64,000 bases of DNA from Rhodosorus marinus CCMP1338 (GCA_029953675.1 JAMWBK010000002.1:1-64000); one strand, 5' to 3'. Positions 3,581 to 63,166 are shown, numbered from the stretch's first letter. Translations and numbers: made by a program. Notes: generated by a model not told the origin, from the letters alone.

Positions 3581-3624
3581 CATCAACTGCTCAAAAGAAC
3601 TTCAATCAGTGACAGGACGTCTGA

Positions 3625-9150: not shown

Positions 9151-9213
9151 TGGTTGTTTTTTTTTTTATTAGTGGCTCGAGTCTTCCGCGGCTAGGTGCG
9201 GTACGTGCAATGT

Positions 9214-16524: not shown

Positions 16525-16926
16525 AGGCTGGAAGAACTCTGGCACGCGAGGCCGACGTGATGACCAGATATCATCTGGAAATTCTATTCGGAGGCCTCGC
16601 TACGACAGCTGTAGAGGACGATGAGTACGCAGAGCTGATCTCGGACCAAATCGCTCTGCCCTGCCGCTGGGGAGGTTTGGGTTTCGCTACTCGAAAGCGC
16701 GTCCAACCCATCGCGTTCTACTGGTCATGGAGAAACACCCTCCGGAACAATGAAGATGAATGGCCATACCTGACTGAACTAGAGCGGGAGGTTACGGCAG
16801 AACGCTCACCAGACACATACGAGCCGATGGAGCAACGATGGTCGACTGCACAGCTGGCGGACCAGATCTGTGCATCGTCGCGAGCAATACAACGGAGGCT
16901 CGGACCAGAAACCCCGCCGCGGATCT
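16525..16926 (+). mobile_element. Internal family A RT-thumb fragment bracketed by telomere-like motifs
   Basis: Matches 46070-46470 (reverse complement). Preceded by CGTTAGTCTGGGGTTA (16510-16524) and followed by TCTGGGGTTA (16924-16933). Confidence 0.85.
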
Positions 16927-16950
16927 GGGGTTAGTAAAGCTTACGGTTAC

Positions 16951-31906: not shown

Positions 31907-32107
31907 AATCGGGAGGATAATATGGAGGATAAATCGGGAGGATAAATCGGGAGGGTAAATCGGGAGGATAAATCGGGAGGATAAATCGGGAGGATAAATC
32001 GGGAGGATATATCGGGAGGATATATCGGGAGGATAAATCGGGAGGATAATCGGGAGAATAATCGGGAGGATAATCGGGAGGATAATCGGGAGGATAATCG
32101 GGAGGAT
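31907..32107. repeat. Minisatellite of 13-bp (GGAGGATAAATCG) then 12-bp (GGAGGATAATCG) units
   Basis: Read directly from the sequence. It explains the PPDY and ILPI low-complexity ORFs. Confidence 0.9.
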
Positions 32108-32642
32108 AGCCTGTGGGATAATCGGCAGCATAGAAAAAAAAAAATCGCCCCTGATTTAAGAATGTCCCATCTTTACTTTTCATTTGACATTGATCCAAAA
32201 CTTTTTTGTCGAGAATCTAATTCATTCAATCATATTGCCTTTCTCTTGAAATCGTGAGCTAATTTCGGTGGTATGTACCCTTAAAATCGAGAAAGCATAG
32301 AAAAAAGAAATACGTGCATGTTCCAATACCAAAGCAATGCACGCCTATTCTCGGAGTTAATATCATTAAACAAAAACAACGTTTGTATCATTAAAATTAT
32401 TTGTACGGCGGTCCTAATCCCCGTTTTCTCCGAAATATTTTGTAATCCAATCGTTTTCAGGAACCTCCGACAAGAAAAGTGAATTGGTTTTATCAATTAT
32501 GCTTTTCTGATTTTGTGCTGATTTTGAGCTTCGGTAAGTTTCGTATCCAAACTGCCGCTGAAGGCTTGCATTCAACTCACCGCTCCCGTTGAAACAGAAA
32601 CTGTTCCAGAAGGACTCTGTTTCAGTCCTGCTACATTTCGTG

Positions 32643-37987: not shown

Positions 37988-39634
37988 TGTGACGTAACCA
38001 CCTACCAGCAATGTCCGGCTATGCAAAATTATGCTCGGGCTGTGCCAAAATCTCTGGAGGTGCAACACCCTTTTGAGCTTAATAGTTATTGCACATCCCG
38101 ATGGAGCAAGAGTATAAGTACGATGGGCAAACTCGATATTTCCCAGGTTAGCTGGAGAGAAGAGAGACAAGATAGAGAAGAACAAGATAGAATTGGGATA
38201 TATTACCTAATTTGGGAGTAATTAGGGGGGAATAAAACACGAAATATGGAATAATTTGAGTAATACCCAGCTGGCAGTTTGAGATGTAAAATCTGGTCTC
38301 ATCGCATGATTGCGATTGAGGAACCGACCCGGAGCCAGAGAACTTGAAGGACCACGAAAATGAGCCCACAACCAAAAAACCTGAGAACCTGTTTTGCAGG
38401 CTACCGCGGACGATAGTCTCCGATCGAGATTCCAAGTTTACCGGGCTCTTTTGGCAGCAACTAATGAGGATGCTTAAGGTCAAGACTCACCTAAGTACGG
38501 CCTATCACCCGCAGACGGACGTACAAACAGAGCGGGTCAACCAAACCTTGGAGACTTACCTCCGGTGTAACAGTAGCCAAGCGTCATGGGACTCTGATCT
38601 TCCCATGGCGGAGTTGGTCTACAACACGCGGATTTCGGAGTCTACTAAGTATTCGCCCTTCGAACTTCTGTACGAACGAAACCCTGAGCAACCGGGATCC
38701 TTAATAGTACCACGTGCAGAAGAAGCTACCCCTACGCCTTTACCCGATGCAGCGGAAGTTCTTCTACAACATCAACACGACCAATACCTGGAGGCGCGGA
38801 ACAACATGCTTTACGCTAAGCAAATACAGAAGATGCGGTATGATGCGAGGCGGCGAAACCCTGACTTTACCCCCGACGAGCTGGTATTATTATCGACCAG
38901 AAACCTGCCGTTGCAAGACTCTAAACCGTTTCGACCGCGGTACATCGGCCCTTTTCGCATCAAACGGAAGATAAATGATGCCGCCTATACGTTAACGTTG
39001 CCAGCAGGGATGAAGATACATCCAACGTTCCACGTTTCCCTGCTGAAGAAATTTAGGGGAAACCCCAACAACGTTCAACTCAACATACCCGATTTTGCAG
39101 CTGAAGTAACGGGAGGCGAAATCAAATCCGTACTTGGTCATCAGATGAAACCAGAGGGAACCAGCGAAGATATGGTATACTTCGAGGGGGAAACAGTAGC
39201 TAATGCTCGATGGATTGCAGCTCACCAGTTGCCACAAACCTCTGCTACAAAAAGGCAAATTCGCTACTACATGAACTTTCATCGTGCTGCTGAATCTGCC
39301 CGACCCCGCGTTTCTTCTTCGGTGGGTGCCATGTGACGTCTCCACCTTCCAGCAATGTCCGGCTATGCAAAATTATGCTCGGACTGTGCCAAAATCTCTG
39401 GAGGTGCAACACCCTTTTGAGCTTAATAGTTATTGCACATCCCGATGGAGCGAGAGTATAAATACGATGGGCAAACTCGATATTTCCCAGGTTAGCTGGA
39501 GAGAAGAGAGACAAGATAGAGAAGAACAAGATAGAATTGGGATATATTACCTAATTTGGGAGTAATTAGGGGGAATAAAACTCGAAATATGGAATAATTT
39601 GAGTAATACCCAGCTGGCAGTTTGAGATGTAAAA
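37988..39634 (+). mobile_element. Internally deleted Ty3/Gypsy (chromovirus-like) LTR element
   Basis: Direct ~303-bp LTRs at 37988-38291 and 39332-39634 (TGTGACGT...GATGTAAAA). PBS TGGTCTCATCGC at 38294-38305. Flanks GCGGG and GCAGG. Confidence 0.85.
38344..39336 (+). pseudogene. pol: Gypsy integrase C-half plus putative chromodomain
   Basis: IVSDRDSKFT, STAYHPQTDVQTERVNQTLE, RPRYIGPFRI, IHPTFHVSLLK, and a chromodomain-like IKSVLGH...RWI segment. Confidence 0.88.
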
Positions 39635-40469: not shown

Positions 40470-42257
40470 CTAGGATGGTCGATCTACAACACCCAGGCCA
40501 GGTGTAAGGGCCATCATCCTTTCCTTCGTGAGCGCCTTGGTTAGCATATCTGCTGTCATCTCATCGGTGCTCAGATACCTTAGCTGCACTTCTTCCGATG
40601 TGCATCTCTCACGGGCGTATTGCAGCTTAACAGATACGTGACGCGACATCCTGCTATCTTCAGATGTCGCCCATCGCAAACACGACACGTTGTCTGTGTA
40701 CGCCACCAATGGCATGCTTGTATTCCTCCCGGTCTCAGTGATGAGCTCCTGAACCCACCGTTAGGTCGTCAACATATCCCCTAACGCCTGGTATTCTGCT
40801 TCCGCCGTCGACTGAGCAACGGCCCTCTGCTTCCACGACCTATACGCCACCGGCGATCCGTTGATCATTATCAGTGACCCTGTAGTGCTCTTGCTGTCTT
40901 CGTGGCTTGCCCAGCTCGCGTCTGAATATCCGGTAACTTGATATCTGAATCCCCCCTGTTCGCCATCCTGCGGCGGTTCTTCGCCATCTGGAGCTACTTT
41001 CGAAACACCGCCCAATTTCATGACTTTGCCTTGTGTTCCCGCCAAATATCTCAGGATCCGCCGCGCTCTTTCAAAATCTCCAAGTCGATAATCTGACATT
41101 TTTCGCGCGATCTGGCCAACTGCAAAACTTATATCTGGTCGCGTTCTGGTACTTAGGAAAAGGAGGGATCCAGTTAGCTCCTGAAATGGTGATGTGGTCA
41201 TTTCCATCGATGTCTCTTTAGTAGAAGGTGTGACGGTGCATGGCGTGGATATGGTGCGGCAGCCCTTCAATCCGTATGTCGTGGTAAGTTTACGGATGTA
41301 ATCTCCGTGCGAGAGGTAGATTTCCTGTTTCCTCCTGTCTCGCTCGATTCTCACACCAAGGAAATCTCGTGCCTCTCCTAGGTGTTTGATGTCGTATAAG
41401 TTGGACAACATCAGCTTCGCCGTCTCCACCTCCGTACGGCTCCCGATGATTAGCATATCATCCACGTATACCGCGATCAGGCACTTCTCTCTGCGGTAGA
41501 CGCAACTCTCGGTACGTAGTTTATGAAATCCTTCTGCGACGAGGTCTTTGATGAGCTTCTTGTGCCATTCTCTTCCCGCTTGTTTCAAACCGTATATACT
41601 TCTTCGTAGGCGGCACACGTGCTCCGCTCTTCCCGGCTCCTCCAGGCCTCGCGGTTGCATCATATAGAGGTCCTCGTTCAAACTCGCGTTCAGGTACGCT
41701 GTTTTCACATCAGCTTGCTCCACTTCGAGATTTTCCACAGCTGCTATAGTCAGGAGCACTCGAACGCTGGAGAAGTCGACTGTAGGAGCGAATACCTCCT
41801 CATAGTCGATCCCTTGTCTTTGTGCGAAACCTCTCGCAACAAGTCGAGCCTTGAAACGTTGGACTGATCCATCTCCGTTTCTTTCCACCTTGAGAATCAG
41901 TCTAGACCCTAGTATTCTCGCAGACTTAGGGACCTCTTCCCGTGGTATCAGTTCCCACGTTTGATTTGCTGGTAGTGAGCCGAGCTCCTCCGATGCGGCG
42001 CGCTTCCAATCTTCCGCGTATGCTCCATTCATCGCCTCACTCCATGATTCCGGATCTGGTACGTCATATAGCGAATCTCCTTTGCGCATCAAGTTCACGG
42101 ACACCTCTCTCTGGTTCCGTTGCTCCCTTTCAAGTCCGTTGACACTCATCTCCTTTGCAGGGAAAACGTTCTCAAACACCCGCCAGTGTCGTGATTCCCT
42201 GAATCCACCATTCGCGGGGTCGTAGATGCGTGCCACATGGGATTCTCGAACACACAT
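40470..42257 (-). pseudogene. pol: Copia reverse transcriptase and RNase H
   Basis: RFKARLVARGFAQRQGIDYEEVFAPT, QADVKTAYLNA, LRRSIYGLKQA, IAVYVDDML, GYSDASWA, QSTAEAEY, ADMLTKAL. A stop at ~40761 splits the RNase H. Confidence 0.93.
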
Positions 42258-45042: not shown

Positions 45043-48000
45043 GTAACCGTAAGCTTTAATGGGCAGCTGCCTACTGCAGCGCAACACTACGTCTAATCCT
45101 ATCTAGGGAAAAACTTACTGGAACCCCGCTACCGGGGTCTCATGCTACGTTCAAAAGAAAAAATAGGCACCAGCGGAGTCTCCAGCTGGTCCACGCGCAA
45201 AGCGCCTAATGCTATCTCCGCGTTACCTCGCCATAGTTGCCGGTTTATCTGGGATCTCACGTCTCTCAGCTCCTCACTCCTGTGCAGTAGGTGTTTGCAG
45301 CTGTCGCGGAGGAACTCTTGTGCCATTTGCCGCGTACGCCCAAACGTCTCTGTCGCTATCAGGATGAACTTGTCATCCGGTTTCTCGATCACCATCGCTT
45401 CCTTGTAGTGAGCGATTTTCCACTTCTCTGCAGCTCTCGCCGCGTATCCGCTATCATCTTGGCTCCGCCGCAAATATTTTCCCAGTAATGGTGACACCAC
45501 CGTCACGTCCAGCGCATACCTTTGTTTGGTCCTCGGATGCCTAGCAACGATATCAGGTCGCAGTCCGTAGTTCTCGAAGTACCCCTCAGGTTCTTGCTCT
45601 ACGTCCATGAAGTTCCATCGCCTCAGCCACCGTGCCAGCTCTCTGCAGATTTCGTCGTGCCTACGTTGCCACAGTCCAGTTGATGTTGGGCAGTGATGAA
45701 ACCGTTGTACCCCAGTCCTTCCGTGTTTACTCCGGCAACTAGTGCACTTCTCGGTGGTCCGCAATCCCGGAATTGGCAGCCCCAGCAGTTGTCGAACGTT
45801 TACCTGCATCCCAACCGCACTCAATTTTTTCGGTGTCAGCGTTGGTATTTCACGCAGCCAGACTCCCGACCCGGATCCCGCGGCGGACCGTATTCGAGCT
45901 CGGTTTTCAGGGGAGATTCGTGGGTTGGTGACCAAGCTTTGGAATGCACAATGGTGTGCCTCTCGAGAGAGGGTTTGTTGTATTGAACCATTATTCCAAG
46001 CTGCAGTCTCGCCCGGTGCGCTTCGAAGAGATGTTTCGCGCGGTTGTTGCAGGGTGGTCAGTGCCAAGATCCGCGGCGGGGTTTCTGGTCCGAGCCTCCG
46101 TTGTATTGCTCGCGACGATGCACAGATCTGGTCCGCCAGCTGTGCAGTCGACCATCGTTGCTTTGTCGGCTCGTATGTGTCTGGTGAGCGTTCTGCCGAA
46201 ACCTCCCGCTCTAGTTCAGTCAGGTATGGCCATTCATCTTCATTGTTCCGGAAGGTGTTTCTCCATGACGAGTAAAACGCGATGGGTTGGACGCGCTTTC
46301 GAGTAGCGAAACCCAACCCCCCCACCGGCAGGGCAGAGCGATTTGGTCCGAGATCAGCTCTGCGTACTCGTCGTCCTCTACAGCTGTCGTAGCGAGGCCT
46401 CCGAATAGAATTTCCAGATGATATCTGGTCATCACATCCGCCTCGCGTGCCAGATTTCTTCCAAACTCGTATGCGAGGCATCGTAGAACATAGTCTAGCC
46501 GCGTTTCCGCACAGAACCTGAAGAGGGCAATTTGCGTCGTAAGCTCCGGTTGTGGGAGCTTGGCAATTTCCTCAAAGACTTTCTCATGCTTATTTTGCAG
46601 CCCGCGGCACTCCTGTTCGATAAATTCTCCGCTGCCTATCGGTATCGAGTGGATGGTGACTCCGTCTCTGGTCACTTGGACTCCAGGAATCTCATGGTTG
46701 ACCACTCGCGTGGTAGTCAGTGTTCGCCCGTACACAGTGCACTTGCCGAGTTGCAGGCGTGCTCCAAGAGAGGGGAGCACAGTTTTTGCCCATGCCAGGG
46801 ATGCCTTCAAGGCTTGTAGCGACCCGACAATCGTGATATCGTCGTGGATAGCAACAATAGTTTCGTTGGGGAACTTGGCTCGCAACGCTCTTAGAAAGGG
46901 CGCCAGGGATAGTGCATGTAGTGCCGGCCCCAGTGGATCTCCCTGTTGGACTCCTGTAGCTGCTTGGAGTGTCAGGCGAGAGGTGTCGGTTTCGTTCTGC
47001 CCAGGGGAAGATCGCCAGCCACGGAGCGTCGGTGAGTCCGCGTTGTCGCTTCCATAGCCAAGTCTATACACTGGTGCAAGCTCCGGGAAGTGCTCGTCCA
47101 CCAGTTGCTTAGCAAGGCGTCGGTCGATGCGGCTAAAGGCATTCTCCAGGTCTAGCCGAAGGACCGCCGAATCGGGTTCGCATGACAAATGGGCCTGGAT
47201 CGCGTGAAGTGAGCGTTCGCACCCGCCACTTACTCCAATACCCAGTTGTAAGGGCACCACGAGCTCACGCACCCTGTCCATAACCGCGTGAAGAGTTCAT
47301 TGCGTTGCTACCTTGCGCAAAAATTCTGGTACTCCGATAGGGCGAACTCCGGGATGTTCCTGCGGCACTGAACCCTTGTTGGGCTTCGCGAAGGGCAGGA
47401 GTCGACTGCTGCGAAGGGCGCGGGTCAGAGCCGGGGAAAATTTCTCCGGAGCGGTCGCGAGTTGTCGCAATAAACGAATCAACGCCACTTGCGTCTGTTG
47501 AGTTGCACCTTGGAGGTGTTCCGCTCGGAGACCTCTAGGGCCTGGGCTCTTGCCCTGAGGAAGACGTGCCACGATCGACATGAGGCCCTCGTCGGCCGCT
47601 TTTCTTGAATTCCACCTCCGCTTAAGTGTTTCGGTATTCAGAGCGAGCAAAGATTCCAGGGCTTGTGCAATCTCGTCTGGTAAGTCACCTTCCGCCGGGT
47701 CGGGAAAGAGCGCTTGTAGTTGTTTCCACGTAGCCGCGGTAAAAGGTGCCATTTCGGTGGCCTGTAGGCTCCGAGCTGCATCTGAAAGGCGGCCAAGGTG
47801 TGCTAGTTTCAACGCTCGCTTGTGGCGCCCGAGATGTTTGCGTCGAACCGCTTCAGCTCCTTGCGGTGCGGTAGTATGCGACAGCATAGACGCCTTGTTC
47901 TCTAGAGCGCTCCGGACCGTAGAGAATTCTCCTTCAAGCACGTGCGATACCTGAATGCCAACATCAAGTGCAGAGTGTCCAAGGACAAGGCCTGGAAGTC

Positions 48001-50781: not shown

Positions 50782-52695
50782 TGTAGCCAACCGTGACACC
50801 AAAAATAGAACATAGATGACTACCAAAAATAGCAGTGTGTCTAGATGAGAGAAAGTAGAGGCCTAGTCTGAGGGTGTAAATAGGCTAGGACGGAGTAGAA
50901 TATGATAGGGCTTAGCAAAGAGAAGTCAAGGGGAAAAATTCTTTGGACTTATCAAGCAACTCTTCGTGAGGGGGTTACTTAGACGAAAAGATCCAATATT
51001 TGGTGGATTTCCGGGGCTGAAGCCGCTGGAACCTGGTGATTGAAGAAAAATGGAACCCGTCCTCCTCCGGGTGCGTGGATGCGCGCGGTTGCTCAACTAC
51101 TAGAGCAACAACAGCGGATGACGGAGCTGCTTGTGCAAGCGCTACAGGAACAGCTACAACAACAACAGCAGCAGTAACAGCTACACAACAGCAACAGCTA
51201 TAACAACAGCAAGGAGCTCGATCGGGACGACTACCAAAGAAATATGAGTCCCCGACATTCGACGGTACATCAGACGTCGAGACATTTATAAGCGAGCTCG
51301 AGCACCTGAAGGCCGTTTATGTCCTCGAGGAGGACAGTGATTTGCTTTCCATCGCGGTTCCAGGGCTTGCGAAGACCGTTACCGAACGGTACCGCACTCT
51401 CCCCTTGGCACAACGGACAACGTGGGCAGCGTTACAAAATGCCCTGCGAACGCGATTCGCCAGTCACAATCAGAATGTGGACTTGGCGACAAAGCTGACG
51501 AGGATGCGTCAACGGGAAGGGGCAACGGTTAATGAATCTGCACCGGAGTTTGAATCCACATTGGATCATCTTCGTAGGTATGACCCTGAGTGTCTTTGCG
51601 AATTCATGCAGATTCAGCTGTTTGTGCCGGGGTTGCGGACTCATGAACAACGTAGGTTTCTACGTCAGTGCACTGCGACGAAAGACACTGCAACACTCCA
51701 TAGAATTGGCAGTGTCAATTCCCGAGGACATATCGGGACCCAGGCGGAAGATGACGAAGACGCGAGGTAGAAACGAACGGACGGCCCGGCCGAGTCATGA
51801 TCAGCACAAGATCGTCTCCCAACCGCCACCTCACCTGGATGCACCAGTACGAATGGCGGTTGGAACGGTGCGCGGGCCGCGGCAACGACGTCAGAGCCAG
51901 AAAAGTAGGGTGAACATCGTGGAGGCACCGTCTGGCAAGAAAGATGGGAGTGAAGACCCGGCAACCCGGGTATTGAGCATCTTGCAGGAACTGACGTCCC
52001 CGACCAACCGCTGCTGCGGATTCCGGCAGAAGTAGGCGGCGTCAATGTCCATGCGATCGTGGACAACGGAGCGCAGGTGAACCTCATGACGACCGCGGCA
52101 GCCGCGAAGATGAAAATTACGGTGCCTAAGGAGACCGAATCGCTGGGTGCAGCGTTCGGACAGGCATTCCGAGTAGGTATAGTCAGGAGGATTACGGTGG
52201 AGTGTACACCCAAGTGGCGCAGTCAGGAAACGTTCCGAGTCGCGGAACGGGGAGTGCCCGAAGTCATCCTGGGATTACCCTGGTTAAAACGCAACCGGGT
52301 AATAATTCATCCGACGGGTTGGTGACGGCGGTCAACGATCTAGGGCAGGACGAATCACTACGGTGCCTCAAACTTCAGCCTACGCCGAGTAATATCACGG
52401 AGGTGCTCCTGGTCGGACGAAAGGAAGTAACAGTCAACGGTGATGAGAACATCGGTGTTCTCCAAATCCGCGAAATGGAAAATCCTGGAACGACGAAGGA
52501 AGTGAGCGCAGCCGACTACCAAAACTAGCAGTGTGTCTAGATGAGAGAAAGTAGAGGCCTAGTCTGAGGGTGTAAATAGGCTAGGACGGAGCAGAATATG
52601 ATAGGGCTTAGTGAAGGGCAGCCAGGGGGAAAAATTCTTTGGAATTATCAAGCAACTCTTCGTTAGGGGGTTACTTAGGCGAAAAGATCCACTAC
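50782..52695 (+). mobile_element. Ty3/Gypsy remnant (LTR-PBS-gag-protease-partial LTR)
   Basis: Direct repeats ~50817-50995 and 52514-52691. PBS TGGTGGATTTCCGGGG (51001-51016, tRNA-Ala-like 3' end with U70). Gag TWAALQNALRTRF; protease HAIVDNGAQVNLM. Confidence 0.8.
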
Positions 52696-53039
52696 TTCTA
52701 TTGGACTTGCTCCGTGTATTGTTGAATCTACTGAATATTTGCATCACTGAATCCAGCTTTTCTCACAGGCGCGGGGTCTTCCATACAGTTTCCGCAAAGA
52801 ATTTTTTCCTTCTCCCATGATTTTGGTAGTTCTCGGAAGTTCTCCACCTTTCTCGACTTCATCAGTGCTGACTATAATGGAGTGCTTCCATAGATTTCAA
52901 AACCTAAACACTCTCTCAACCACTGCCGACTGACTCGCACGCTCTGAAAACCACAGCTCTGTTATTTCTCTAAATTTCTTCGTGCAACATTTTCCCTCCC
53001 TAGTTCTTAGTTCTCTCTCACTGGTTCCAGCAAATCATT

Positions 53040-53230
53040 GTGGAAAGCTTTGGTCACGTAAGTAAGTCGGGTTTGGAGTGGTAGCGGAGTAGCGCTTCAG
53101 GCTATGCTAGTGAAGCCCAGTAAAGTCCAGTAAACCAACTGCACCCCTCGTTTCCCTCTTGCAGCATAAAACATTTCACGCCTTGCGTAGCGTTGCTACA
53201 TAGCACTTCAGGCAATTTTAGTAAAGTCCC
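53040..53230 (+). mobile_element. Shuffled family F 3' fragments
   Basis: GGAAAGCTTTGGTCACG..., GTAGCGCTTCAGGCTATGCTAGT..., and AGTAAAGTCCAGTA match the family F RLE and tail. Confidence 0.7.
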
Positions 53231-53967
53231 ATTTCGTAGACCTCAGCTCTTTGTTTATTTTTCTACTATTTCCTACGCGACTACCCTTTCTCGTATCCCA
53301 AAACCAGGATTATTTCGACGCCAGATTGTCCTTTCGATAAAGTCGTCACAGCCATGTTCCCGCTCCGCAAACACGATGGCTCAGAACCAATGAAAATCGA
53401 GGTTTCTAAAAATAGAATTGACATAAGTTCGTCGAACAAAATGCGTCCCAACTGAATGCTAAGGAATTAGTTGATGACTGAACAGCGAACCTAGAGGAGA
53501 AAGAACTTTCAGTCCTTCAGCATCCGCTTAAACCATTGATTCATAGTTTGAGTTTGAGAGAAAAGGGTCTGAAGAAAAGCAAAGACTACGTGGGGTTACC
53601 ATGTCGTGCCTCGAACATCAACGCCAGGTTCATACAAACCACATTAAGGAAACCCCCTTCGACGGATTGACCGCGCATCGTAGCGAAAACATTCCATCGG
53701 TGGTGTCGAGGAGAAAATCGATTTTCTTCCCCAAGCTGAAAGATGCTTTTGTCGTGAACTTTGATCAGTTTCCGCGGACGCGGGAGCTCTAGCTTCCTTA
53801 AAAGCGGTTTTGTTTGTGGAGAGTTAGACACGGTGTATGTGTATAAGAAGAGTCGCTGGGTGGATACGGGGTGTTGGGATTGATTGAGCGAGCCGTGAGT
53901 GCTGTGAATAGAAGAGATCTTTGTAAGGTATAGTATTGCTATAGACGGGATTATTAAGTTGGAGAAG

Positions 53968-56900
53968 ATGTTACGTTTGAAGATGTTGCAGGCTGCTGTC
54001 TGCTGTGCGACGGTGTTGTGGGTTTCGATGCACCCTGGGGTCGTGGGGGGGGTTGTGACAAACCCGTCTTCAACTGATGCCTGCGACGGTTGGGGACTGT
54101 CTAGTGAGATCTGCGCTATGGCAGTAGACATTAAGTATTCGGTGGTCACTACGGATTCGCAGAGCACTGTGAAAATCTATGCACCGTACTTCTACATCCT
54201 CGACTTCACAAAGAATGACACTGATACCACAATGTTTATGGGAACTAACACGACGGTGCATATCTACGGATTCTACGTTCTGATAAAGGGAAAGGCTGGA
54301 GTGAGCGCGAACATTCGAGGTTCCAATCTAATCATTTTGGCCTCAATCATCGACGTCCAGACGGACGGATCGTTCTCTCTGGATATGAGAGGGCCTCCAC
54401 GTGAAGTCGACCCTCCCTTGGTTCCACATAAAATCCCACCTCCCCCGCCTAGAGAACGTTTCCTGGGACAACAGGGAATTAATGGTACACAAGGGGCTCC
54501 CGGATTGCCTGGAACGGAGGGCTGGCCCGGTGGGACAGTTGTCTTCGTATCAAAGCAACTCAACCTGACCTCGTTGCACCAGGGGGGGCACAAAATGCTG
54601 TTCCTCGACGACGGAAGCCCTGGGACACCGGGTGGAAAAGGGGGTCCAGGACAGCAAGGAGGACAGGGATCTGACGGAATCAGCTGCAGTTTCCACAGGA
54701 CTGCTAGTGGTTCATCGAACGACAGGAATTGCTGCTACGAATGTGACCCTATGGACATTCATCCTTTTAACGGCTATAAAAGATGTCGAAGCTACCAGGC
54801 CGGTAAGGCGGGATCTGGAGGCCCAGGAGGTCCTGGTGGACCAGGTGGCGATGGTGGACCTCCTGGATGGCTATCTGTGTATGCAAATTCAGCGGGTGAA
54901 GCGGGAGGCAAGCCGATAAGCAACGAGGAAGCGTTGAAAATACTCGAATCGTCGTCGAACTATGGACAAGGGGGTTCAGGAGGACTTGGCGGTGACGGTG
55001 GAGGTGGTGGTGTAAATAAACCGGACGCGCTCTGCACGACGTATAAGAAAGACAATTTTTTTTGGGTTGAATATAAAGGCGACAAGGCCGTCAAGCCCGT
55101 TGGTGTGCAAGGCTCCCAAGGTTCTCAAGGGGCCAAGGGAAAAGATAGCGGCTGGACCAGACCGACGTTCATACGAGCGACGACAAACGCTACAGGGCAC
55201 CCATCAGATCTGAACAAATTCGAAAACCCGCAGCAATGGGCCGACTTCGACCCTGAGCCAGCGGAGTACCTTCAATTCGGACTCGAACTTTCGGAGAACA
55301 TGCTCAATTCGCTGGCCTTCATGGACGACGATGAGGCGGCTCAGAACGCGTACAGCATAATCCTTCAATCTGTGAGCGATATAATGTACAATGCCCAGCT
55401 GTGGGCCAATCGGGCCAATCCGGAGGATAAGAAGGTGTTCTCCTCCTACGTGAACAAGGCCAGAACATTGATCAAGAGCATCAACAGGGTGAGCACACCT
55501 AGCGGATCATCTCTCGGCGAAGTGTCAGTGAAGAGCTTCGAGTCACAGCTCGATGATTTGGACAGCTTTCGAGTACTCGCCCAGGAGGTGGAAGGTTACT
55601 ATGATGAATACGCGAAGAATGTAAACGATACCAAGACGTCTGAAAAGATTCTCGCAGAATCCACTAAGAGCTCTCTGGTAGGAGTTCAGGCTCAGACGAG
55701 ACTGCAGAATGAGCTCCTCACAGCGCTACAACAGATGAATAAGACGTTGGATGAGGTTGCTCTGAATATTCATCTGGTCCAGATGAAGCTCGGAGATAGT
55801 GAGTTCGAGTTGGATGCGTGCTGGGAGAAAGCTCAAGCGATCCTCAAGTTCAAGACCATGATGGAGTTCGTCTCTTTCTTCACTAGCGTGGCTGACTTTG
55901 GATTTGGAGCGACCAAGCTGCTCGGGAAGGCCTCCGATGTGCTGTCCAAAGATGAAGGCTGGTTCAAAGGAATCGAGGCTGCATCGGGGTACAAGTTCGC
56001 CTATATTCCGGGAATGATCAACAACCTTGAAAAGCTTATACCTGGAACAGGACAAAGCGCAAACTGGGCACCGTACGAGTCGAGCATGAAGCTCATCAGT
56101 GGAGATCAGAGTTCTCTGGACGGTTACACCGGGGATCTACAGAACGTGCTGGCGGGAATATACCGCGCAAAAGACTATGATGATGCTCAGGGAGTTTACG
56201 AAAAGATGAAGAAGGCGCAGGATGACTACAAGAATGCAAAAATCAACATGGCCAAGTCTGAGATTACCAACAAGGTTAACGGCATGAAATCTGCGTGCCC
56301 CGGGCAGGCGCAAAACTTTTTCCGCAACTTCGACACGCTCCAGATGTGGGTCAACCAACGTAACGACCTGCTTGCTGTATACACGGCAATTAAGGTATAC
56401 TTTGACCGAGTCACCGCGAAGAAGCTTTACTTGAGGAATGTTGCGCAGAGGCTTCTGACCCAGCTTCAACAGAACATCGTCAACCCTGCATCGATCGCCG
56501 TGGCTACCGTGCACCAAGAAACATACAACATGATGGTTGACGAGTTCTCGAAGAAGCTCGGTCTCGTCCTCAACGCACGGAGCTACCTCATGATGGGAGC
56601 GGATAAAGATACGTTGCCCAAGTTGGCCTTTGCAAACTGCCGGTGGGAGACATCGATTCTCAAGAACTCGGGTAACATGTTCTTCAAGTGCTCAGCGGAC
56701 GCTATTTTGCAGCTGAAGAATTCACTGTCTCATTGGCACACGAGCGTTTACACTGAAAAGCAATTGGCGCACTGGTTGTCATACTGGGGCCCAATAGAGT
56801 TGAACGAGAAGACCGTGGGTGCTGGTCGATGGCAGGATTTCAAGACGACTGGCATCATCAACTTCTGTATGGATCCCACTGAACCGATCTTTAACCGGGG

Positions 56901-57804
56901 ACCAGGCGATAATAGCGAACAGTTCTTCCCGCTGATCAGCATAGACAGTATTTACGTCGTTCTAGATGGGGCACCAGAGAACTCAGGCAAACGAGTTGAT
57001 ATTATACATCAGGCCACTTCTGGGATAGTTCGAGCGATGGAGAACCCAGACTACAAGACCGGAAAGGACTCAATGCACCCCTACAGCACGAAGAAGTTTA
57101 CGCACGCGGACCGCAACCTACGGTTCATCTACAAAGGCGCAGCTCCTCCAGATGAGCACGAGAAGGTCAAGAGCTGGATGCATTCTACGAACATCGCGCT
57201 GAAGGCAGATCTCGGCAGCGCAAATACGTACCTGAGGGTAAGTCCCTTCAGCAACTACAGGGTTGCGGCAGATATAAGCCTACTCGAGCAGGTGGACAAC
57301 GTTCGAGTGTACTTCACGGGATACTACGTACCAGCCGCGGACTTTCACATAGCGCCGATCTCTAGTCTCCCCGATCCCGTCTTTTGCTCCTCGACCATTG
57401 GAAAGTCAACATCTACCACTCATCCATCAAGCAAAAACTTGTCCGTTGAGGAAGCAAAGGGATTGAAGTGTTCGTCATACTCCGTATCAGCGGAGCGCCT
57501 GGACGATTACGTCAAGAAGGATGGGACCCGGACCAAGGCATGCAAAATTAGCATCAAGTACCCTACCGAAAACCAACCGAAGCTTCCAGAGAAGATCCGA
57601 GTCGAGTGGGAGTGGGCTGAATATCACGACGACATCGATGGCGAGCATAGCAACGGAATTACGATGGCCATCAACGCCTCCAAAGCCATATTGAGTATCA
57701 AGCATACATACGGTAAACCGCCGCCCACGGAAACGGTTTTGCTGACGAAAACGTGTCCCTCCAAACTTCGAGTAGCTAGCACCTACCCTGACGACTGCCA
57801 ATAA
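53968..57804 (+). CDS. Large secreted Gly-rich/helical protein, putative Tc(TcA)-like toxin-fold protein, paralogue 2
   Basis: Intact ORF (first ATG 53968; the ORF track starts at TTG 53959). Hydrophobic N-terminus and the same domain order as 9214-13137, with shared blocks CDGWGLSS, YAPYFYILDF, CWEKA, DTLQMWV, YLMMG, YWGPIELN, FFPLISIDSIY, YLRVSPFSNYR. Confidence 0.85.
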   Translation: MLRLKMLQAAVCCATVLWVSMHPGVVGGVVTNPSSTDACDGWGLSSEICAMAVDIKYSVVTTDSQSTVKIYAPYFYILDFTKNDTDTTMFMGTNTTVHIYGFYVLIKGKAGVSANIRGSNLIILASIIDVQTDGSFSLDMRGPPREVDPPLVPHKIPPPPPRERFLGQQGINGTQGAPGLPGTEGWPGGTVVFVSKQLNLTSLHQGGHKMLFLDDGSPGTPGGKGGPGQQGGQGSDGISCSFHRTASGSSNDRNCCYECDPMDIHPFNGYKRCRSYQAGKAGSGGPGGPGGPGGDGGPPGWLSVYANSAGEAGGKPISNEEALKILESSSNYGQGGSGGLGGDGGGGGVNKPDALCTTYKKDNFFWVEYKGDKAVKPVGVQGSQGSQGAKGKDSGWTRPTFIRATTNATGHPSDLNKFENPQQWADFDPEPAEYLQFGLELSENMLNSLAFMDDDEAAQNAYSIILQSVSDIMYNAQLWANRANPEDKKVFSSYVNKARTLIKSINRVSTPSGSSLGEVSVKSFESQLDDLDSFRVLAQEVEGYYDEYAKNVNDTKTSEKILAESTKSSLVGVQAQTRLQNELLTALQQMNKTLDEVALNIHLVQMKLGDSEFELDACWEKAQAILKFKTMMEFVSFFTSVADFGFGATKLLGKASDVLSKDEGWFKGIEAASGYKFAYIPGMINNLEKLIPGTGQSANWAPYESSMKLISGDQSSLDGYTGDLQNVLAGIYRAKDYDDAQGVYEKMKKAQDDYKNAKINMAKSEITNKVNGMKSACPGQAQNFFRNFDTLQMWVNQRNDLLAVYTAIKVYFDRVTAKKLYLRNVAQRLLTQLQQNIVNPASIAVATVHQETYNMMVDEFSKKLGLVLNARSYLMMGADKDTLPKLAFANCRWETSILKNSGNMFFKCSADAILQLKNSLSHWHTSVYTEKQLAHWLSYWGPIELNEKTVGAGRWQDFKTTGIINFCMDPTEPIFNRGPGDNSEQFFPLISIDSIYVVLDGAPENSGKRVDIIHQATSGIVRAMENPDYKTGKDSMHPYSTKKFTHADRNLRFIYKGAAPPDEHEKVKSWMHSTNIALKADLGSANTYLRVSPFSNYRVAADISLLEQVDNVRVYFTGYYVPAADFHIAPISSLPDPVFCSSTIGKSTSTTHPSSKNLSVEEAKGLKCSSYSVSAERLDDYVKKDGTRTKACKISIKYPTENQPKLPEKIRVEWEWAEYHDDIDGEHSNGITMAINASKAILSIKHTYGKPPPTETVLLTKTCPSKLRVASTYPDDCQ

Positions 57805-58211
57805 ACATGGTGCTGTTCAAAGCTGTCCCTAAATACCGACCCATCACCAAATATGAATCATCAACCCGCTATCTTTGGTAGCAACTCAACGCCTACCTCG
57901 CCCTTCCGTGCTCTGTGGCTTCACCTGCATGGGACGCAAATCCACCGTTCTTAGCCTTCAACCGGGACAAAAGCGCGCTGAACTTTTTGAATGAATGTTT
58001 TCTTATTCGAAGACTGAGTAGAAGGCCTTCGGTTTTGGCCCACACTCGCCATCGCCGCCTGGGCTTGCACGTTTTTTACCCTCCTACAGTCCCTGTGACG
58101 TCCTGACATGACATCTGGCTCAACGTATCGGTGAGCTAAAAATAACCATCGTGCATACACATTATAGTACGGCCTAGATGGCCGACTGTTGGCTTACGTT
58201 AGTCTGGGGTT

Positions 58212-58381: not shown

Positions 58382-58497
58382 GGTTACGTTAGTCTCGGCT
58401 AAGAGATTTGCCACAATTAGTCTGGGGTTGGACTTTGGAGTTTATCGTGGTGATAAAGTTACGCTTTCATTCTTTCTACGAACGCTTATCGAGTGAT

Positions 58498-60018
58498 ATG
58501 ACTACTCTCGAGCCCGTGCCTCCGGATGGGGGGGGCTTTTGCACAGACGCAACGATGGAAGACCTCCCGGCCGTTAGCCTGAGGGCAGACGGACCCGAGC
58601 CTCTGCCAGTACCTGTTTCTGAGCCTACAACTGCATCTGCACTTGACAACGACGTACCTACTCCCTTGGCAATTGACCTGAGCTGCGGAGCGCTGAAGCT
58701 GCATCTCGACGCGCCCAAGCATAAGACCCCGCTCTACAATGGGCTTATGCTGCGGTTTATGGGTCTCTTAGCCCAGGCACACGCCAATGGCACCGAGGCT
58801 CAACTCCTTCACAATCTGACTACGACGCCACAACAAGCTGCACCGAGGGCACAACGCCCCCTCCCTGTCTACGAACCAGCAAACTACGCCACTGCAGCAG
58901 CCCGCCCGCGATCTCCCGAGACACGTGATCTCGATTCCAATGCATTCCCAGATCTCGCAACGGCCAATGAGCAAGCACGGACAAGGACTCGAGCTCAACC
59001 TCAACCAATGAGCTGGACGACACGTGTCCGCGCCAACCAGATCCCAGCAGCTGCCAATCGCTCGTTTTTCGCGAGCATTCATGGGCTGCAGTACCAGAGC
59101 CAGAAGGACGTTGATGCATTTGTGCTACTCAATGCTCGACCTCGGGACTCCACCAGAAGCAAGGCCCATCATGCTTGGGATATCGAGCGCCTAGCCGGCC
59201 TTCAGAAAAATTCGCTGCTCCAGCTGGACTACTTTGATCATCATGTACACGTCATCGCTCATCATACCGCCTTCCAACTACTCCGCGACGCTACCAACGC
59301 AGGGGCCTTCGAACCCACCAGAGGAGCACACCTGCCTCCTGATCAACGTATCCAAGCTGTCAAGCTCTCTCCAACGTCACACGAATACCTGAGCATGAGG
59401 GAAAAGCTCCGTCACCAACCGGCAGACTATCCCCGCGCTGCACTGATCCACAACCTGCTCCGCTACCGACGGATCCAGCGGATTGTTACAAATCGCAGGA
59501 GTCTCCCACCCAACAACCGAGAGGCACTCCTGGGCCACGTCAGGGCCGAGCTCGATCGCACCCTGGCCAGCCTCCACGCTCAAGCTCAACGAGCACCCGA
59601 CAGTTGCCTGCGCGTGCCATTCTCCGACCCTGAGCTTCCAGAGCACTCGACAACAACCGAGCGCAGAGAGCCACGCTCTCTGGACCGAACCCGGGTAGCT
59701 GACCCTCAACCGGCGGCACTGGAGAGGGAGAGTGCGGAACCCCTCGCAGCGACTACGCATAGCGCTGATTCTGCCCAAGTCCCAGCCGCTCGGGAGGACA
59801 ACACGCATGAGACGCCTGCCGCGACAGCCCGTGATCCACTAGACTCGGAGCCTGACCCCTCCACCACTAGCGATCAACCAGTGACCCCTGCAGAGCCGAT
59901 GCAAGGACTTTCGACGGCCCAAGACAAGAGACAAGTGGCTCCACCCACTAAGCGCCCTAAGCCTGCCAACGCCGTCGACGACCTCACGCCCGACTCCCTC
60001 TCGTCGACTCAATCATGA
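58498..60018 (+). CDS. Family D ORF1 (gag-like, homologous to family A ORF1)
   Basis: Open frame (ATG 58498). LLNARPR...LDYFDHHVHVIAHH..FQLLRDA..GAF aligns with family A LRNVRPP...VDFIASHACLLSH..IPILQSA..GVF. ATGA overlap with ORF2. Confidence 0.75.
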   Translation: MTTLEPVPPDGGGFCTDATMEDLPAVSLRADGPEPLPVPVSEPTTASALDNDVPTPLAIDLSCGALKLHLDAPKHKTPLYNGLMLRFMGLLAQAHANGTEAQLLHNLTTTPQQAAPRAQRPLPVYEPANYATAAARPRSPETRDLDSNAFPDLATANEQARTRTRAQPQPMSWTTRVRANQIPAAANRSFFASIHGLQYQSQKDVDAFVLLNARPRDSTRSKAHHAWDIERLAGLQKNSLLQLDYFDHHVHVIAHHTAFQLLRDATNAGAFEPTRGAHLPPDQRIQAVKLSPTSHEYLSMREKLRHQPADYPRAALIHNLLRYRRIQRIVTNRRSLPPNNREALLGHVRAELDRTLASLHAQAQRAPDSCLRVPFSDPELPEHSTTTERREPRSLDRTRVADPQPAALERESAEPLAATTHSADSAQVPAAREDNTHETPAATARDPLDSEPDPSTTSDQPVTPAEPMQGLSTAQDKRQVAPPTKRPKPANAVDDLTPDSLSSTQS

Positions 60019-63000
60019 GCAGCTCCTCAGACGAATATACTCCGAACCGCTCTCGCTCATCCCGCCGTGCTCGTGCTCGTCGCCAACGACCTCCCACTTC
60101 GACGCAGTCACTCTTCGAGACCGACTCGAACGCCTGGCTCTCGTCTCTGCACGACTTCACTCTCAACGTAACCGATAATGGCAACCGCTGGTGGCAGCTG
60201 ACTCAGGCTCCGACGCCTACTCGCCAATTCGTCCCCGATAACCTGAAAACACGCTGGAACCATCTCATGTCGAAAGCCCTGGAACTTGCCCTTGATACGT
60301 CAGCGCCGAACCTGTCACGCCTGTTCATCTTCGCTCTCCCTAGTCTCGCACTCGGCTACACACGCGACCTGGCCCCTTCTGCGCAGATGCTCGCCGTTAT
60401 GGACGGAAGGTTCTCCACGGTGTGGGAACACCTTACTGCTCACAGCAAAACCCTTGACACCAACTGTATCGTACCTCCGCCGCCTCAGACCCGCCACCGA
60501 CAGAAACGAGCCCTACAACTCGCCAAAGCTCAACGTATGTCCCAGTCTAGCCAACTCCTACTGGCCACCGATCTTGCCTCGAAGACTCCTGCCACCTGGC
60601 GCGTTCTGACTACGCTCTTCCCTGAGTACGAGGCCGCAACACTCTCCTCGGAGCTTGAAGACGCCCTACAGGCAAAGCTCAACGGACTGCAACGCAAGAT
60701 ATGGAACCCGACTTTGGCCTCTGACGAGAGCCTCCTGTCAACGCTGGAACACCTACCGTACGCCACAGCCCCCGGGCCGAGTGGACTCAAAGCCGAACAT
60801 CTGCGAAGTCTCACCATGACAACGCAACCGGTACTTGTACGCTTCCTTCGCAAGCTTGCCACCACTCCGGAGAGCTTCCCTGACGTGTTTCTCGAAGCCA
60901 TGCGCAGCAACCGACTCCTCGCGAAAGACAAGCGAACGTCTGCCGAAGCTAGACAAGGGTACCCTCTTCGCCTACGACCGCTAGGGATTCCTGAGGTACT
61001 GCGGAAGGCCGTCACCCAATGGACACTTCGCGCTGTCGCCACGCCCCTTCGCGACTTTCTGCTCCCGGAACAACTCGGCATCTCGGTCAGCGGCGGCTGC
61101 GAACACGCCATCCACCTCGCGGAAGCCCACCTCGCAGCGCGCCCAAATGACGTGCTCCTCAAACTTGATCTCGCAAACGCGTTCAACAGAATCGACCGAC
61201 GCCTCGCAAACCGTATCATCGAGCTAGCTTTCCCCGAATTGAAGTCGCTTATGACAATGAGCTACGGACCACGAGGCGAGAGCGCCCCACGCCAATTCGG
61301 ATGGCGAGACAGCGATGTCGATGACTGGCTCCAGCTCCGAGCCTGGACTGGAGTCCAACAAGGCGATCCGTTCTGACCTGCTTTACACGCGCTCGCCCTT
61401 TCCCCACTCCTACGAGCACTACGAGACCGGTTTCCGAGGATCACCCTTAGCGCAATCCACGACGACCTCACCTTACTTGGCCCTCTGAAGGACGTGAAAG
61501 AAGCGCTACACTGGAGCGAGCACCACCTCCCCGAAATAGGCGCACAACTTCAAAGGACGAAATGCGAGCTTTTTGGACTCCAACTGCCGACGACCAGACT
61601 CGTCAACAGGGAAATTCCCGACGTACATGTCACCCGGGACGGAATCCAACTTTATTCCATCCCTATTGGCACACGGACCTACGTCCAAGACGCGAACAGG
61701 AAGCTACAACGAGAACATGAAAAACTCGTCCAAGAGGTCATCCGTCTACCGACCACTGAGCTACCAATTAAACTGTGCCTATTCCGCTACTGCGCAGGAC
61801 CGCGTCTAGACTTTGCTCTACGCACGCTCGCCCTACAATACGGAGCCACTCTCGCACGCGAAGCCGATCGCATCTCGCTCCTGGAACTCGACAAACTGTG
61901 CGGCTCGCTCCTCGAAGGCCAGGGCCTCACAGGACCCGCAAAAGACGTGGTCGAAGCGCAGATCCAGCTCCCTTGCCGATGGGGTGGCGCAGGCCTAGCG
62001 ATGAGAACACGAATACAACCCCTCGCCTTCTTCAGCAGTTGGCGACAGACTCTGAAGCTCAATTGGACTGGATCTAGCCACCTAGGAGCGCTACTCGATG
62101 CCTGCACATCGACGAACCTGACCGAGCACCACCACATTCGACCCCTGCTCCACTCGACGGATCAACTTGGAGCACAACTAATCGAAGCGAGCCTCCACTC
62201 AAAACGCTGCCTGGCACGAGGAACACCGGCCCCCATACTCCGCCTAACAGAATGGCAATCGTTGGAGAGCCAAGAACAAGCAGAGAACCCGCACACACCA
62301 CCCGACAGGCCCTTGATCGGTTCAACCCAAAAACTCCTCTCCAACTGGAGTCACCGACGGGCATTCGAGGAAATGGTGGAGAACGCGGAGATCAGCGAGA
62401 CGGCACGTGCGCGAATACGCTCCTGCAAGGGATCAGGAGGCGGTACTTGGCTGCGAGACTTGCCAAGGAAACACGGACGCGGCCTAAGTAGCGGAGAACT
62501 GAACCTGAGCTTTCGACAACTGTTGGGATTGCCCCTGCCGAGCGTACGAATACTTAGTACGTGTACGATATGTTCCCAACCACACGACGCTGCAGGCATT
62601 CAACGCCTCACCACTGCACCAGCTCTACCGGGAGCTGGACAATTCGGCATAACATGGTCAGGGACGCCCTGGCGACAGTGCTGAGACAATGGCGACTAGA
62701 AGTGACAATAGAACCGACCGGACACTACCAAGGCAGTCGGCTTCGGCCTGACATTCTAGCCCGACACCCACGAACAGGCAAGCTCTACGTGATCGATGTG
62801 AAGGTGACCTCGCCTTTGCAAAGAACACACCTACACAAAGCGTCTTGGGAGACCGGGTATGCGGCACGGAAAGCGGAAAAGTTTAAAGAGTCCAAATACC
62901 GTGACAGTATCGGAGAACATAACGACGACATCTTCGTCCCCTTCTGCCTGGAAACATTTGGGCAGATGGGACAACAAGCGAATGAGTTCCTCAAGGAAGC

Positions 63001-63166
63001 GACTATACACCTGGATCAGCGGGCAACGCAAGTAAGTGAGGCTCGGGCGATCTTGAACCGCACTTTGTGGAAAGGAAACGCTATCCTTGCCACCCAGGCT
63101 CGTCGTGTCGACGAAGCAGACTATGACATCGTCCTTATCTTAGAACGTAGCCACACAACCCATTAG
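60015..63166 (+). pseudogene. Family D ORF2 (RT-CCHC-RLE) with one nonsense codon and one frameshift
   Basis: APGPSGLKAEHL, KLDLANAFN, TGVQQGDPF*P (TGA 61374-61376), AIHDDL, LPCRWGG, CTICSQPH, frameshift near 62610, LRPDILARHP..YVIDVKV. Confidence 0.9.

Follow-up and report, generated by a model that had tools for sequence, protein, structure and literature searches.

Collectins and class A scavenger receptors are built from a collagen-like segment, an alpha-helical coiled coil and a globular recognition domain, and collagen-like Gly-X-Y proteins are common in mimiviruses. In the T-even phage adhesin gp38, glycine-rich motifs are reported to alternate with hypervariable segments, in a polyglycine-II sandwich (PMC3157838, PMC12892980). 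We compared with these systems two large genes, A and B, of the window (the whole stretch of 64,000 nucleotides analysed), together with their relatives. The closest relative of A is O, an intact ORF at 9596-13408 of locus L001 of Rhodosorus marinus CCMP1338. The features of the window are as follows (aa numbers are those of A, except for the linker of B):

53968-57804, + strand: gene A (ORF 53959/53968-57804), intact, intronless, 1278 aa plus stop, 80% aa identity to O
9214-13137, - strand: gene B, intact, intronless, 1307 aa plus stop, deep paralogue of A
9628-9735, - strand: Pro/Thr-rich linker of B (aa 1135-1170), with a 42-bp tandem duplication inside, at 9635-9717
52876-53967, + strand: region upstream of A, alignable in patches (72-77%) with the sequence upstream of O; a probable promoter and 5' UTR
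53968-54048, + strand: signal-peptide-like N-terminus, aa 1-27; basic start, then hydrophobic core, the sole stretch of A with Kyte-Doolittle >1.4
54049-54387, + strand: N-terminal domain, aa 28-140; Cys39-Cys49 pair (CxGWGLSSxxCxMAxD), and predicted beta strands in succession
54388-54462, + strand: Pro-rich segment, aa 141-165; P150, P153, P159 and P161 invariant in 6/6 members
54463-55140, + strand: glycine-triplet region, aa 166-391; five Gly-X-Y segments parted by loops of 24-41 aa
55258-56607, + strand: predicted alpha-helical region of ~450 aa (aa 431-880); hydrophobic periodicity 3.35-3.55 in most helices, omega 0.18
55837-55917, + strand: conserved hydrophobic segment following CWEK, aa 624-650, rich in Gly, Ala and Phe and lying within the long helix; hydrophobic in Andalucia too
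56608-57372, + strand: C-terminal alpha/beta domain, aa 881-1135, carrying the CxWE, FCxDP and SPF motifs; conservation with Andalucia godoyi is highest here
57373-57468, + strand: short Ser/Thr-rich linker, aa 1136-1167; a longer Pro/Thr linker stands here in B
57469-57801, + strand: small Cys-bounded beta domain, aa 1168-1278, Rhodosorus-specific; replaced in Andalucia by fn3 repeats, a transmembrane helix and a tail

The likeness of A to collectins and class A scavenger receptors is one of plan: Gly-X-Y repeats follow a Pro-rich stretch, the long helices are heptad-like, a globular domain is C-terminal and the protein is predicted to be secreted or surface-exposed. However, there is no sequence homology, Collagen, lectin and SRCR domains are lacking, and the Gly-X-Y runs of A comprise 5-8 triplets each, are interrupted by loops with structure of their own and are Gly-rich at X and Y. 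The Pfam Collagen model matched no protein of the family, in which no long uninterrupted Gly-X-Y run was found. A resembles gp38, as described in the two reports, in alternating conserved glycine-rich motifs with its least constrained loops, but differs in that its segments are longer and keep a strict triplet register, and the two share no sequence match; searches of PHROGs and Pfam returned no match to gp38 or other phage adhesin families.

The sole sequence homologue found outside Rhodosorus is ANDGO_06449 of the jakobid Andalucia godoyi (EukProt EP00762_P005661), an uncharacterised protein whose automatic name, 'Twitchin', reflects its fn3 repeats only. It matches the family profile at E=1.7e-14, collinear with aa 80-1140. 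Over ~1150 aa it keeps the same Gly-triplet register, 7 Cys in common, the FCxDP and SPF motifs and the hydrophobic segment, but identity is only 22%, and fn3 repeats (Pfam 1.4e-23), a transmembrane helix and a basic, cytoplasmic tail take the place of the Rhodosorus linker and beta domain. In A. godoyi, the ~1150-aa module is the outermost part of a type I membrane protein, carried on an fn3 stalk. The Rhodosorus proteins have no fn3, transmembrane or tail parts, and the jakobid analogy shows topology only.

Two paralogues and their family

The DNA is that of Rhodosorus marinus or of a species very near to it. Genes A and B lie head to head with 40.8 kb between them. BLASTP of A against B gave a single alignment, collinear from end to end (453/1326 identities, 34%; 52% positives; E = 0), which bears out the first-pass annotation of A as a collinear but diverged paralogue on the opposite strand, ~41 kb away. 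Every conserved block quoted there is present in both proteins (CxGWGLSSxxCxMAxD, CWEK, FxRxFDTxxMWVxQxNDL, CxWExSxL, NFCxDP and SPFSNYR), and the two frames, described there as intact, are open for 1278 codons in A, counted from the first ATG, and 1307 in B; ORFs of more than 1200 codons cannot have arisen by chance in DNA of ~52% GC. The differences that it listed were also found: the Cys-rich loop of the Gly-rich region is unlike in length and Cys number between A and B, and B alone carries the Pro/Thr linker. No third copy was found within the 64-kb window by tblastn.

We define the family by a ~1150-aa module comprising a beta-rich head, a Pro-rich stretch, five Gly-X-Y segments in fixed register, a helical region that includes CWEK and the hydrophobic segment, and a C-domain marked by CxWE, FCxDP and SPF. 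Over this module, from one end to the other, A can be aligned to B, O, C, D/P0001 and the Andalucia protein, with ~100 invariant columns. At least five full-length paralogues are intact (A, B, O, C and D), and about 5-6 members were found; of these, R. marinus CCMP1338 contributes no fewer than three beside A and B, namely O, C and D. At each of the loci NDN08_002099, NDN08_004889 and NDN08_001000 there is an intact ORF (1263-1270 aa), with identities to A of 80%, 59% and 58%, yet their GenBank models are fragments of 657, 500+132 and 328 aa with spurious introns; O, C and D are each mis-modelled in this way. Every member is either split or cut short in the reference annotation of R. marinus, which makes the family invisible to ordinary protein searches, and a literature search for the NDN08 locus tags returned no mention of them. 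The NDN08 proteins and the MMETSP0315 transcripts are paralogues distinct from A and B. All paralogues are intronless; the Rhodosorus genome has about 3 introns per gene (PMC10250338).

The view of O as A's orthologue from a different strain was considered and dropped: element copies in the window and in CCMP1338 are 98.3-99.0% identical, against 83.5% between A and O at the nucleotide level, and D shows 92.6% identity between MMETSP0315 and CCMP1338. On these sequence comparisons, O is more likely a paralogue.

An HMMER profile scan of 1.84 billion proteins matched Rhodosorus proteins and the one Andalucia godoyi protein only. When A, its non-Gly part or a profile served as the query, word-indexed protein searches returned P0001 and P0002 alone each time; in the search with A, Gly-rich words probably saturated the candidate list. 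JGI metagenome contigs, IMG/VR and GTDB genomes were scanned with patterns, and no relative emerged. Neither Pfam, NCBIfam, PHROGs and PDB sequences nor a C-domain profile yielded a match to a characterised family; the sole value below 0.001 was that of phrog_15511 (unknown function; E=7.3e-4), on the low-complexity Pro/Thr linker of B. By these searches, the family is small and lineage-restricted, and has no detectable relative in any curated family.

Protein layout and probable site of action

The module, of about 1270-1310 aa in its proteins, is of unusual design, with five short Gly-X-Y segments in invariant register, interleaved loops that are structured but under weaker constraint, and a long helical rod. 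In A the segments occupy aa 166-189, 214-237, 279-300, 333-347 and 379-391, the variable Cys loop corresponding to aa 238-278. The Gly register is invariant across six proteins, from Rhodosorus to Andalucia, and the period is 3.0 in 5/5 segments. The predicted secondary structure begins with a beta-rich head, continues through long helices and an alpha/beta domain, and closes with a beta tail. Two AlphaFold2 runs on shallow alignments (3-4 sequences) reached a pLDDT of 42-44; as both models are poor, no fold is established. The N-terminal model (pLDDT 43.6) found no match with Foldseek. In practice the family is of modest use, as a candidate new fold for structural studies and as a set of markers for how unicellular red algae build and use their cell surface.

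Several features point outside the cell. The hydrophobic leader of A, called as a signal peptide by eye and hydropathy only, is likewise present in B, O, C and P0008, and no further stretch of transmembrane grade is seen in the hydropathy of the family members. Eighteen Cys columns are common to the Rhodosorus members (at least three), and 10 N-glycosylation sequon columns are conserved in at least three members. The best reading of the protein is that of a secreted, disulphide-rich, elongated cell-surface or matrix protein. More specifically, and tentatively, we give a probability of roughly 45% to A and B being functional representatives of a small, lineage-restricted Rhodosorus family of large secreted glycoproteins that act at the surface or in the wall/mucilage matrix as elongated, probably oligomeric, adhesion, recognition or matrix-organising proteins.

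In such a protein, the five Gly-X-Y segments would adopt polyproline-II or collagen-like helices, packed within or between chains, and would display the variable loops. With their period near 3.5, the amphipathic helices may build a coiled-coil or helical-bundle rod; together with the Gly-X-Y segments they make some oligomer formation plausible. Attachment to the wall or to a partner could be the role of the globular domain at the C-terminus, of the Ser/Thr/Pro linker and of the small beta domain, and the paralogues may be alternative versions, differently expressed. The hydrophobic segment in the rod and weak Foldseek matches to the pore-forming Tc toxin A subunits speak against this reading, and leave some room for a membrane-active role.

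Viral origin and membrane activity as alternatives

That the family derived from giant viruses (Nucleocytoviricota) or was exchanged with them, a viral surface or fibre-type protein having been captured and then duplicated in Rhodosorus, is unlikely. This idea concerns origin, and fits a matrix protein as well as a toxin. The single strong Foldseek match of the predicted model, an outlier in BFVD, is to A0A481Z1I0, an uncharacterised 1032-aa protein of Mimivirus LCMiAC02, a metagenomic member of the Mimiviridae (E=1.4e-11, prob 1.00, 824 columns, covering 824/879 residues; next match 5e-3). However, the query model is poor, identity is 14%, the TM-score is 0.16 and the likeness is seen in predicted models only. 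The very patchy spread (of 1.84 billion proteins, only those of a single red-algal genus and one from a jakobid matched), the absence of introns from the paralogues in a genome of the intron density given above, the position of the loci amid mobile elements and the frequency of collagen-like Gly-X-Y proteins in mimiviruses are consistent with capture. On the other side, the HMMER scan included no viral protein among its matches and the IMG/VR scan none either, no giant-virus hallmark gene was seen among the scanned ORFs of the window, and GC and GC3 are similar in all four genes compared and near those of the surroundings. Any viral transfer must be old, given the depth of the A-B split. With one red-algal genus, one jakobid and perhaps one mimivirid, the spread makes the family a candidate for virus-mediated gene exchange between distant protists.

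The first-pass annotation had called the proteins toxin-like, and nothing in the analysis shows a toxin: no sequence match to any toxin family was obtained, and the Foldseek matches are weak. A membrane-active pore-forming toxin or defence protein, in which helices with a hydrophobic tip would insert in the manner of TcA or ClyA while the head and loops bind the target, is distinctly unlikely. For the C-terminal model, each of the six best PDB matches is a Tc toxin A subunit, a fold with a helical shell around a channel of long helices that end in a hydrophobic tip (E=8.9e-4 to 1.7e-1), the best being 9cbc_B (E=8.9e-4, prob 0.77, 761 columns); but the pLDDT of the query is 42, TM-scores are 0.10-0.12 and the rmsd is about 50 Å, so the long predicted helices alone may produce the match. 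A shares with the Tc toxin A subunits (TcdA1, XptA2, YenA2) long helices, predicted in A, and a hydrophobic segment, the latter conserved and lying within a predicted helix of ~100 residues, and it is predicted to be secreted and soluble. However, aa 624-650 reaches a Kyte-Doolittle value of just 1.46-1.53 and contains charged residues, A is half as large as TcA, and the jakobid homologue is anchored in its own membrane by the fn3 stalk. Even at E<=10, none of the six members matched a toxin family in Pfam, NCBIfam or PDB sequences: TcA signatures (Pfam TcA/VRP1-type, pore-forming and TcB-binding) were not found, no TcA chain was matched among PDB sequences, and no match was obtained to the Pfam families of ClyA/Hbl/Xax-type alpha-pore-forming toxins. 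A TcB/TcC-like (RHS/YD-repeat) partner is missing too: the 20 window ORFs of at least 200 aa gave only reverse-transcriptase and Tf2 SH3 domains, and the L001-L003 flanks contain nothing but transposable elements.

A combination of the two ideas is highly improbable. In it, eukaryotes and giant viruses would share a counterpart of helical pore-forming or entry machines: a viral protein of great age, serving as a fibre or in membrane penetration, with a Gly-triplet binding head and a hydrophobic-tipped rod for insertion into membranes. It would have passed among Mimiviridae, a jakobid and a red alga, and would have been domesticated and duplicated in Rhodosorus for secreted defence or competition.

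Selection, expression and genomic setting

Constraint and transcription count in favour of the extracellular reading. Between A and O, dN/dS is 0.27 overall and 0.18-0.47 by segment; it peaks in the glycine-triplet region and loops (0.37-0.47) and is 0.18-0.28 elsewhere. The A-C and O-C comparisons gave 0.13-0.35. Between A and B, synonymous sites are saturated, so dN/dS per domain is not estimable for this pair. No segment is near 1, and none of the five ORFs, ~3.8 kb each, has a premature stop. As judged from these ratios, the family is under purifying selection, a conclusion that is independent of O being an orthologue or a paralogue. Full-length MMETSP0315 transcripts exist for type D (P0001/P0008; UniRef A0A7S0G5F2) and fragments for a B-like type; a search for transcripts of A or B themselves found none. 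Type D is thus transcribed, and the proposal of an old multigene family kept by selection stands, on the saturation of A-B, the A-O ratio, the intact paralogues and the transcribed type D. The suggestion that variable loops set target specificity fared less clearly: the loops are the least constrained part, which is compatible with it, but there is no sign of positive selection at per-segment resolution.

The interval between A and B is rich in retroelements (RVT_1, RVT_2 and Tf2-type ORFs), 37.5% of the window is repeated within the window, and 4/5 family loci sit amid retrotransposons, in agreement with the setting described earlier. The subtelomeric location proposed with it was not borne out: the window contains no telomere-like array, and in CCMP1338, whose assembly is near chromosome level, one relative is found 0.80 Mb into a 3.19-Mb contig, another 0.41 Mb into a 1.16-Mb contig and a third 73 kb from a contig end, so that one of three at best is near an end. 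Nor does the family look like contingency or effector genes, which would be telomere-adjacent with many variable or broken copies: it is small, has no broken and no near-identical copies, and every full-length locus examined is intact.

That the ORFs are retroelement cargo (an env-like gene) or decaying pseudogenes is effectively refuted: A and B are indeed intronless, embedded among LINE-like, copia-type and Ty3-type elements and, for B, followed by an A11 run, but the gene regions (~8385-15002 and 52876-57951) are unique in the window while nearby elements recur at 84-99.6% identity, the flanking elements vary in kind and orientation from locus to locus, element copies are ~99% identical against 34-83% for the genes, and the omega of 0.27 and the five uninterrupted ORFs speak against decay. 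Nor is a retrocopy origin supported: a poly(A) tail is lacking from A, O, C and D alike. The A11 run of B lies 45 nt past its stop. Downstream of A, nucleotide homology with O stops at 57951; upstream, the homology between A and O argues for duplication at the DNA level.

Two collinear genes and the parts of their products

Two genes of the family lie head to head, with 40.8 kb between them:

53968-57804 (+), gene A, 1278 open codons counted from the first ATG
9214-13137 (-), gene B, 1307 open codons

A single BLASTP alignment, collinear from end to end, covers both proteins at 34% identity and 52% positives (E = 0); tblastn found no third copy within the window. The first-pass annotation had described a diverged, collinear pair with a common set of motif blocks, and both proteins carry every block. 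In B, aa 1135-1170 form a Pro/Thr-rich linker with a 42-bp tandem duplication inside; the corresponding part of A is just a short run of Ser/Thr. An A11 run (9157-9167, minus strand) lies 45 nt past the B stop codon, right after an AATAAA-like sequence; it is either where polyadenylation takes place or what is left of a retrocopy tail, and nothing comparable was found at A or at its paralogues O, C and D. Alignment of six family proteins gave the following order of parts.

Parts of the protein, in A numbering

aa 1-27: hydrophobic leader
aa 28-140: beta-rich domain with a Cys pair
aa 141-165: Pro-rich stretch, several prolines invariant
aa 166-189, 214-237, 279-300, 333-347 and 379-391: five Gly-X-Y segments
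about 450 aa: predicted helices, most with a hydrophobic period of 3.35-3.55
inside the helical region: CWEK motif, then a conserved hydrophobic Gly/Ala/Phe segment (aa 624-650)
aa 881-1135: alpha/beta domain with CxWE, FCxDP and SPF
next: Ser/Thr(/Pro) linker
last part, 110 aa: Cys-bounded beta domain

The glycine register of the Gly-X-Y segments (period 3.0) is invariant from Rhodosorus to the jakobid Andalucia, and the intervening loops measure 24-41 aa, one of them holding 4-6 cysteines. The Rhodosorus members keep 18 Cys columns, and 10 N-glycosylation sequon columns are common to at least three members; besides the leader, no transmembrane-grade segment was found.

Family members in Rhodosorus and Andalucia

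Close database relatives of A and B came from Rhodosorus marinus only, and neither exact product, that of A or that of B, occurs in the collections searched. When 1.84 billion representative proteins were scanned in full with HMMER, a profile of the non-glycine part returned five matches: four Rhodosorus proteins or fragments, and ANDGO_06449 of Andalucia godoyi. The loci behind the Rhodosorus matches hold at least three intact, intronless paralogues in R. marinus CCMP1338 (GCA_029953675.1), which GenBank models as fragments with invented introns.

Paralogues of A and the GenBank models at their loci

O: contig 4, 0.80 Mb into 3.19 Mb (locus L001, 9596-13408); 1270 aa, 80% identity to A; NDN08_002099, 657 aa
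C: contig 12, 0.41 Mb into 1.16 Mb (locus L002, 6593-10396); about 1267 aa, 59% identity to A; a 500-aa model and NDN08_004889, 132 aa
D: contig 5, about 73 kb from the contig start (locus L003, 10001-13789); 1263 aa, 58% identity to A; NDN08_001000, 328 aa

The subtelomeric bias proposed by the first-pass annotation is not seen in these positions, and the window contains no telomere-like array. We considered and rejected that O might be A's orthologue from a different strain: the window's retroelement copies match those of CCMP1338 at 98.3-99.0% nucleotide identity (including 4.7 kb at 99.0%), whereas A and O are just 83.5% identical (dS 0.42), and protein D differs by 7% between two sampled strains. 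From these sequence comparisons, the window most likely belongs to R. marinus or a strain very close to it, and O is most likely a paralogue of A. The intact members of the species would then number at least five (A, B, O, C and D), with a B-like sixth besides. D is 92.6% identical to a transcript of MMETSP0315 (P0001/P0008), which is complete and also bears out the intronless gene structure; the same source holds B-like transcript fragments with the Pro/Thr linker (P0004/P0006).

No relatives turned up when JGI metagenome contigs, IMG/VR and GTDB prokaryote genomes were scanned for patterns. Pfam gave no significant match for any of the six members at E<=10, nor did NCBIfam, a PDB sequence search with three profiles or sequences, or a C-domain profile search. 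The sole PHROGs match under 0.001 (phrog_15511, function unknown, E=7.3e-4) fell on B's Pro/Thr linker, which is of low complexity. No paper found in the literature search cites the locus tags. The family is new in the sense that it fits no family described so far and the literature searched does not mention it.

The Andalucia protein (2055 aa) is collinear with A between residue 80 and about residue 1140 and has the glycine register and seven cysteines in common with it. It differs in what comes after this module, namely fn3 repeats (Pfam E=1.4e-23), a transmembrane helix, a basic stretch and a cytoplasmic tail, an order which indicates that the module is displayed on a stalk outside the cell. 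By homology, this topology would say more than any other single finding about where the Rhodosorus proteins act. The gene model is probably 5'-truncated, since it starts at the match to A residue 80 and has no leader peptide; its name, 'Twitchin', reflects the fn3 repeats only.

Constraint and possible function

Overall dN/dS between A and O is 0.27 (Nei-Gojobori), and varies along the protein.

dN/dS of A versus O by part

Helical region: 0.18
Tail domain: 0.19
C-domain: 0.26
N-terminal domain: 0.28
Loops between glycine segments: 0.37
Glycine segments: 0.45
Cys loop: 0.47

For A-C and O-C the values are 0.13-0.35; between A and B synonymous sites are saturated, so this pair yields no domain-wise dN/dS. 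No stop or frameshift was found in any member examined. Of the outcomes which the first-pass annotation said would refute its reading, dN/dS near 1 and a lack of expression are thus not what was found.

We consider it somewhat short of an even chance (about 0.45) that the family consists of elongated extracellular proteins, secreted, disulphide-bonded and glycosylated, that belong to the cell surface or matrix. The evidence supports secretion, conservation and, for the homologue, a topology that faces outwards; we infer fibre or oligomer formation and a role in adhesion or matrix. The glycine-triplet region and the less constrained loops would form a variable face, and the helical region a rod or oligomerisation element. 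The proposal that variable loops determine specificity agrees with the relaxed constraint, and is compatible but unproven.

Two AlphaFold2 runs, on alignments of just 3-4 sequences, reached pLDDT 43.6 and 42.0, and only their secondary structure is usable. The N-terminal model had no Foldseek match. Against BFVD, the sole clear outlier for the C-terminal model was a 1032-aa uncharacterised protein of the metagenomic Mimivirus LCMiAC02 (E=1.4e-11, probability 1.00, 824 columns; next match 5e-3), a comparison of predicted structures only. An origin in giant viruses, which would fit either a surface or a toxin function, is unlikely. Slightly less probable again is a membrane-active toxin or defence protein: the top six PDB matches of the C-terminal model are Tc toxin A subunits, at a best E of 8.9e-4 with TM 0.10-0.12 and rmsd about 50 Å; this predicted likeness is a lead at most. 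The toxin-like and contingency or effector-like character initially suggested is not supported. For the extracellular protein favoured here, function is predicted only, and orphan secreted families are common among protists; of moderate interest are the unusual glycine architecture, the distribution over a red alga, a jakobid and possibly a mimivirid, and the systematic mis-annotation.

Retroelement surroundings

Retroelements crowd the A-B interval and both outer flanks:

4847-6862, LINE-like RVT_1 ORF
16838-19159, LINE-like RVT_1 ORF
23286-25706 (-), LINE-like RVT_1 ORF
38344-39336, Tf2-type ORF
40761-42257 (-), copia-type RVT_2 ORF
46220-47281 (-), LINE-like RVT_1 ORF

Self-repeated sequence (70-99.6% identity) makes up 37.5% of the window, but the A and B gene regions are unique within it. 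This uniqueness, the flanks that differ between loci and the dN/dS values effectively refute retroelement cargo or pseudogenes. An old, selected multigene family in retrotransposon-rich DNA, as first suggested, is the right description.

The LINE-like elements are very young, as their copies are 99.1-99.6% identical inside the window and 98.3-99.0% identical to those elsewhere in CCMP1338:

971-5635, versus L003 16420-21096
6846-7789, 23238-24598 and 27884-29071, versus L002 14113-16611

From 600 bp past the A stop codon, four long ORFs follow in a row (58408-63166, plus strand; 536, 453, 396 and 201 aa). They have no Pfam match at 1e-3, and in tblastx they are 30-45% similar to the LINE-like elements in the reverse-transcriptase part; the run is probably a diverged non-LTR element. 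Just 5' of the conserved, putative promoter region of A, a 184-nt direct repeat (50818-51001 and 52514-52697; 93% identical, 1.7 kb apart) may represent the ends of a small LTR-type insertion. A 13-bp minisatellite, AATCGGGAGGATA, occupies 31907-32108 (16 copies, 93% matches) in a stretch at 30-34 kb of low GC (45-47%) without repeats elsewhere in the window. At the 3' end of the LINE-like ORF 16838-19159, a 266-bp unit is duplicated in tandem (18901-19418; 98% identical).
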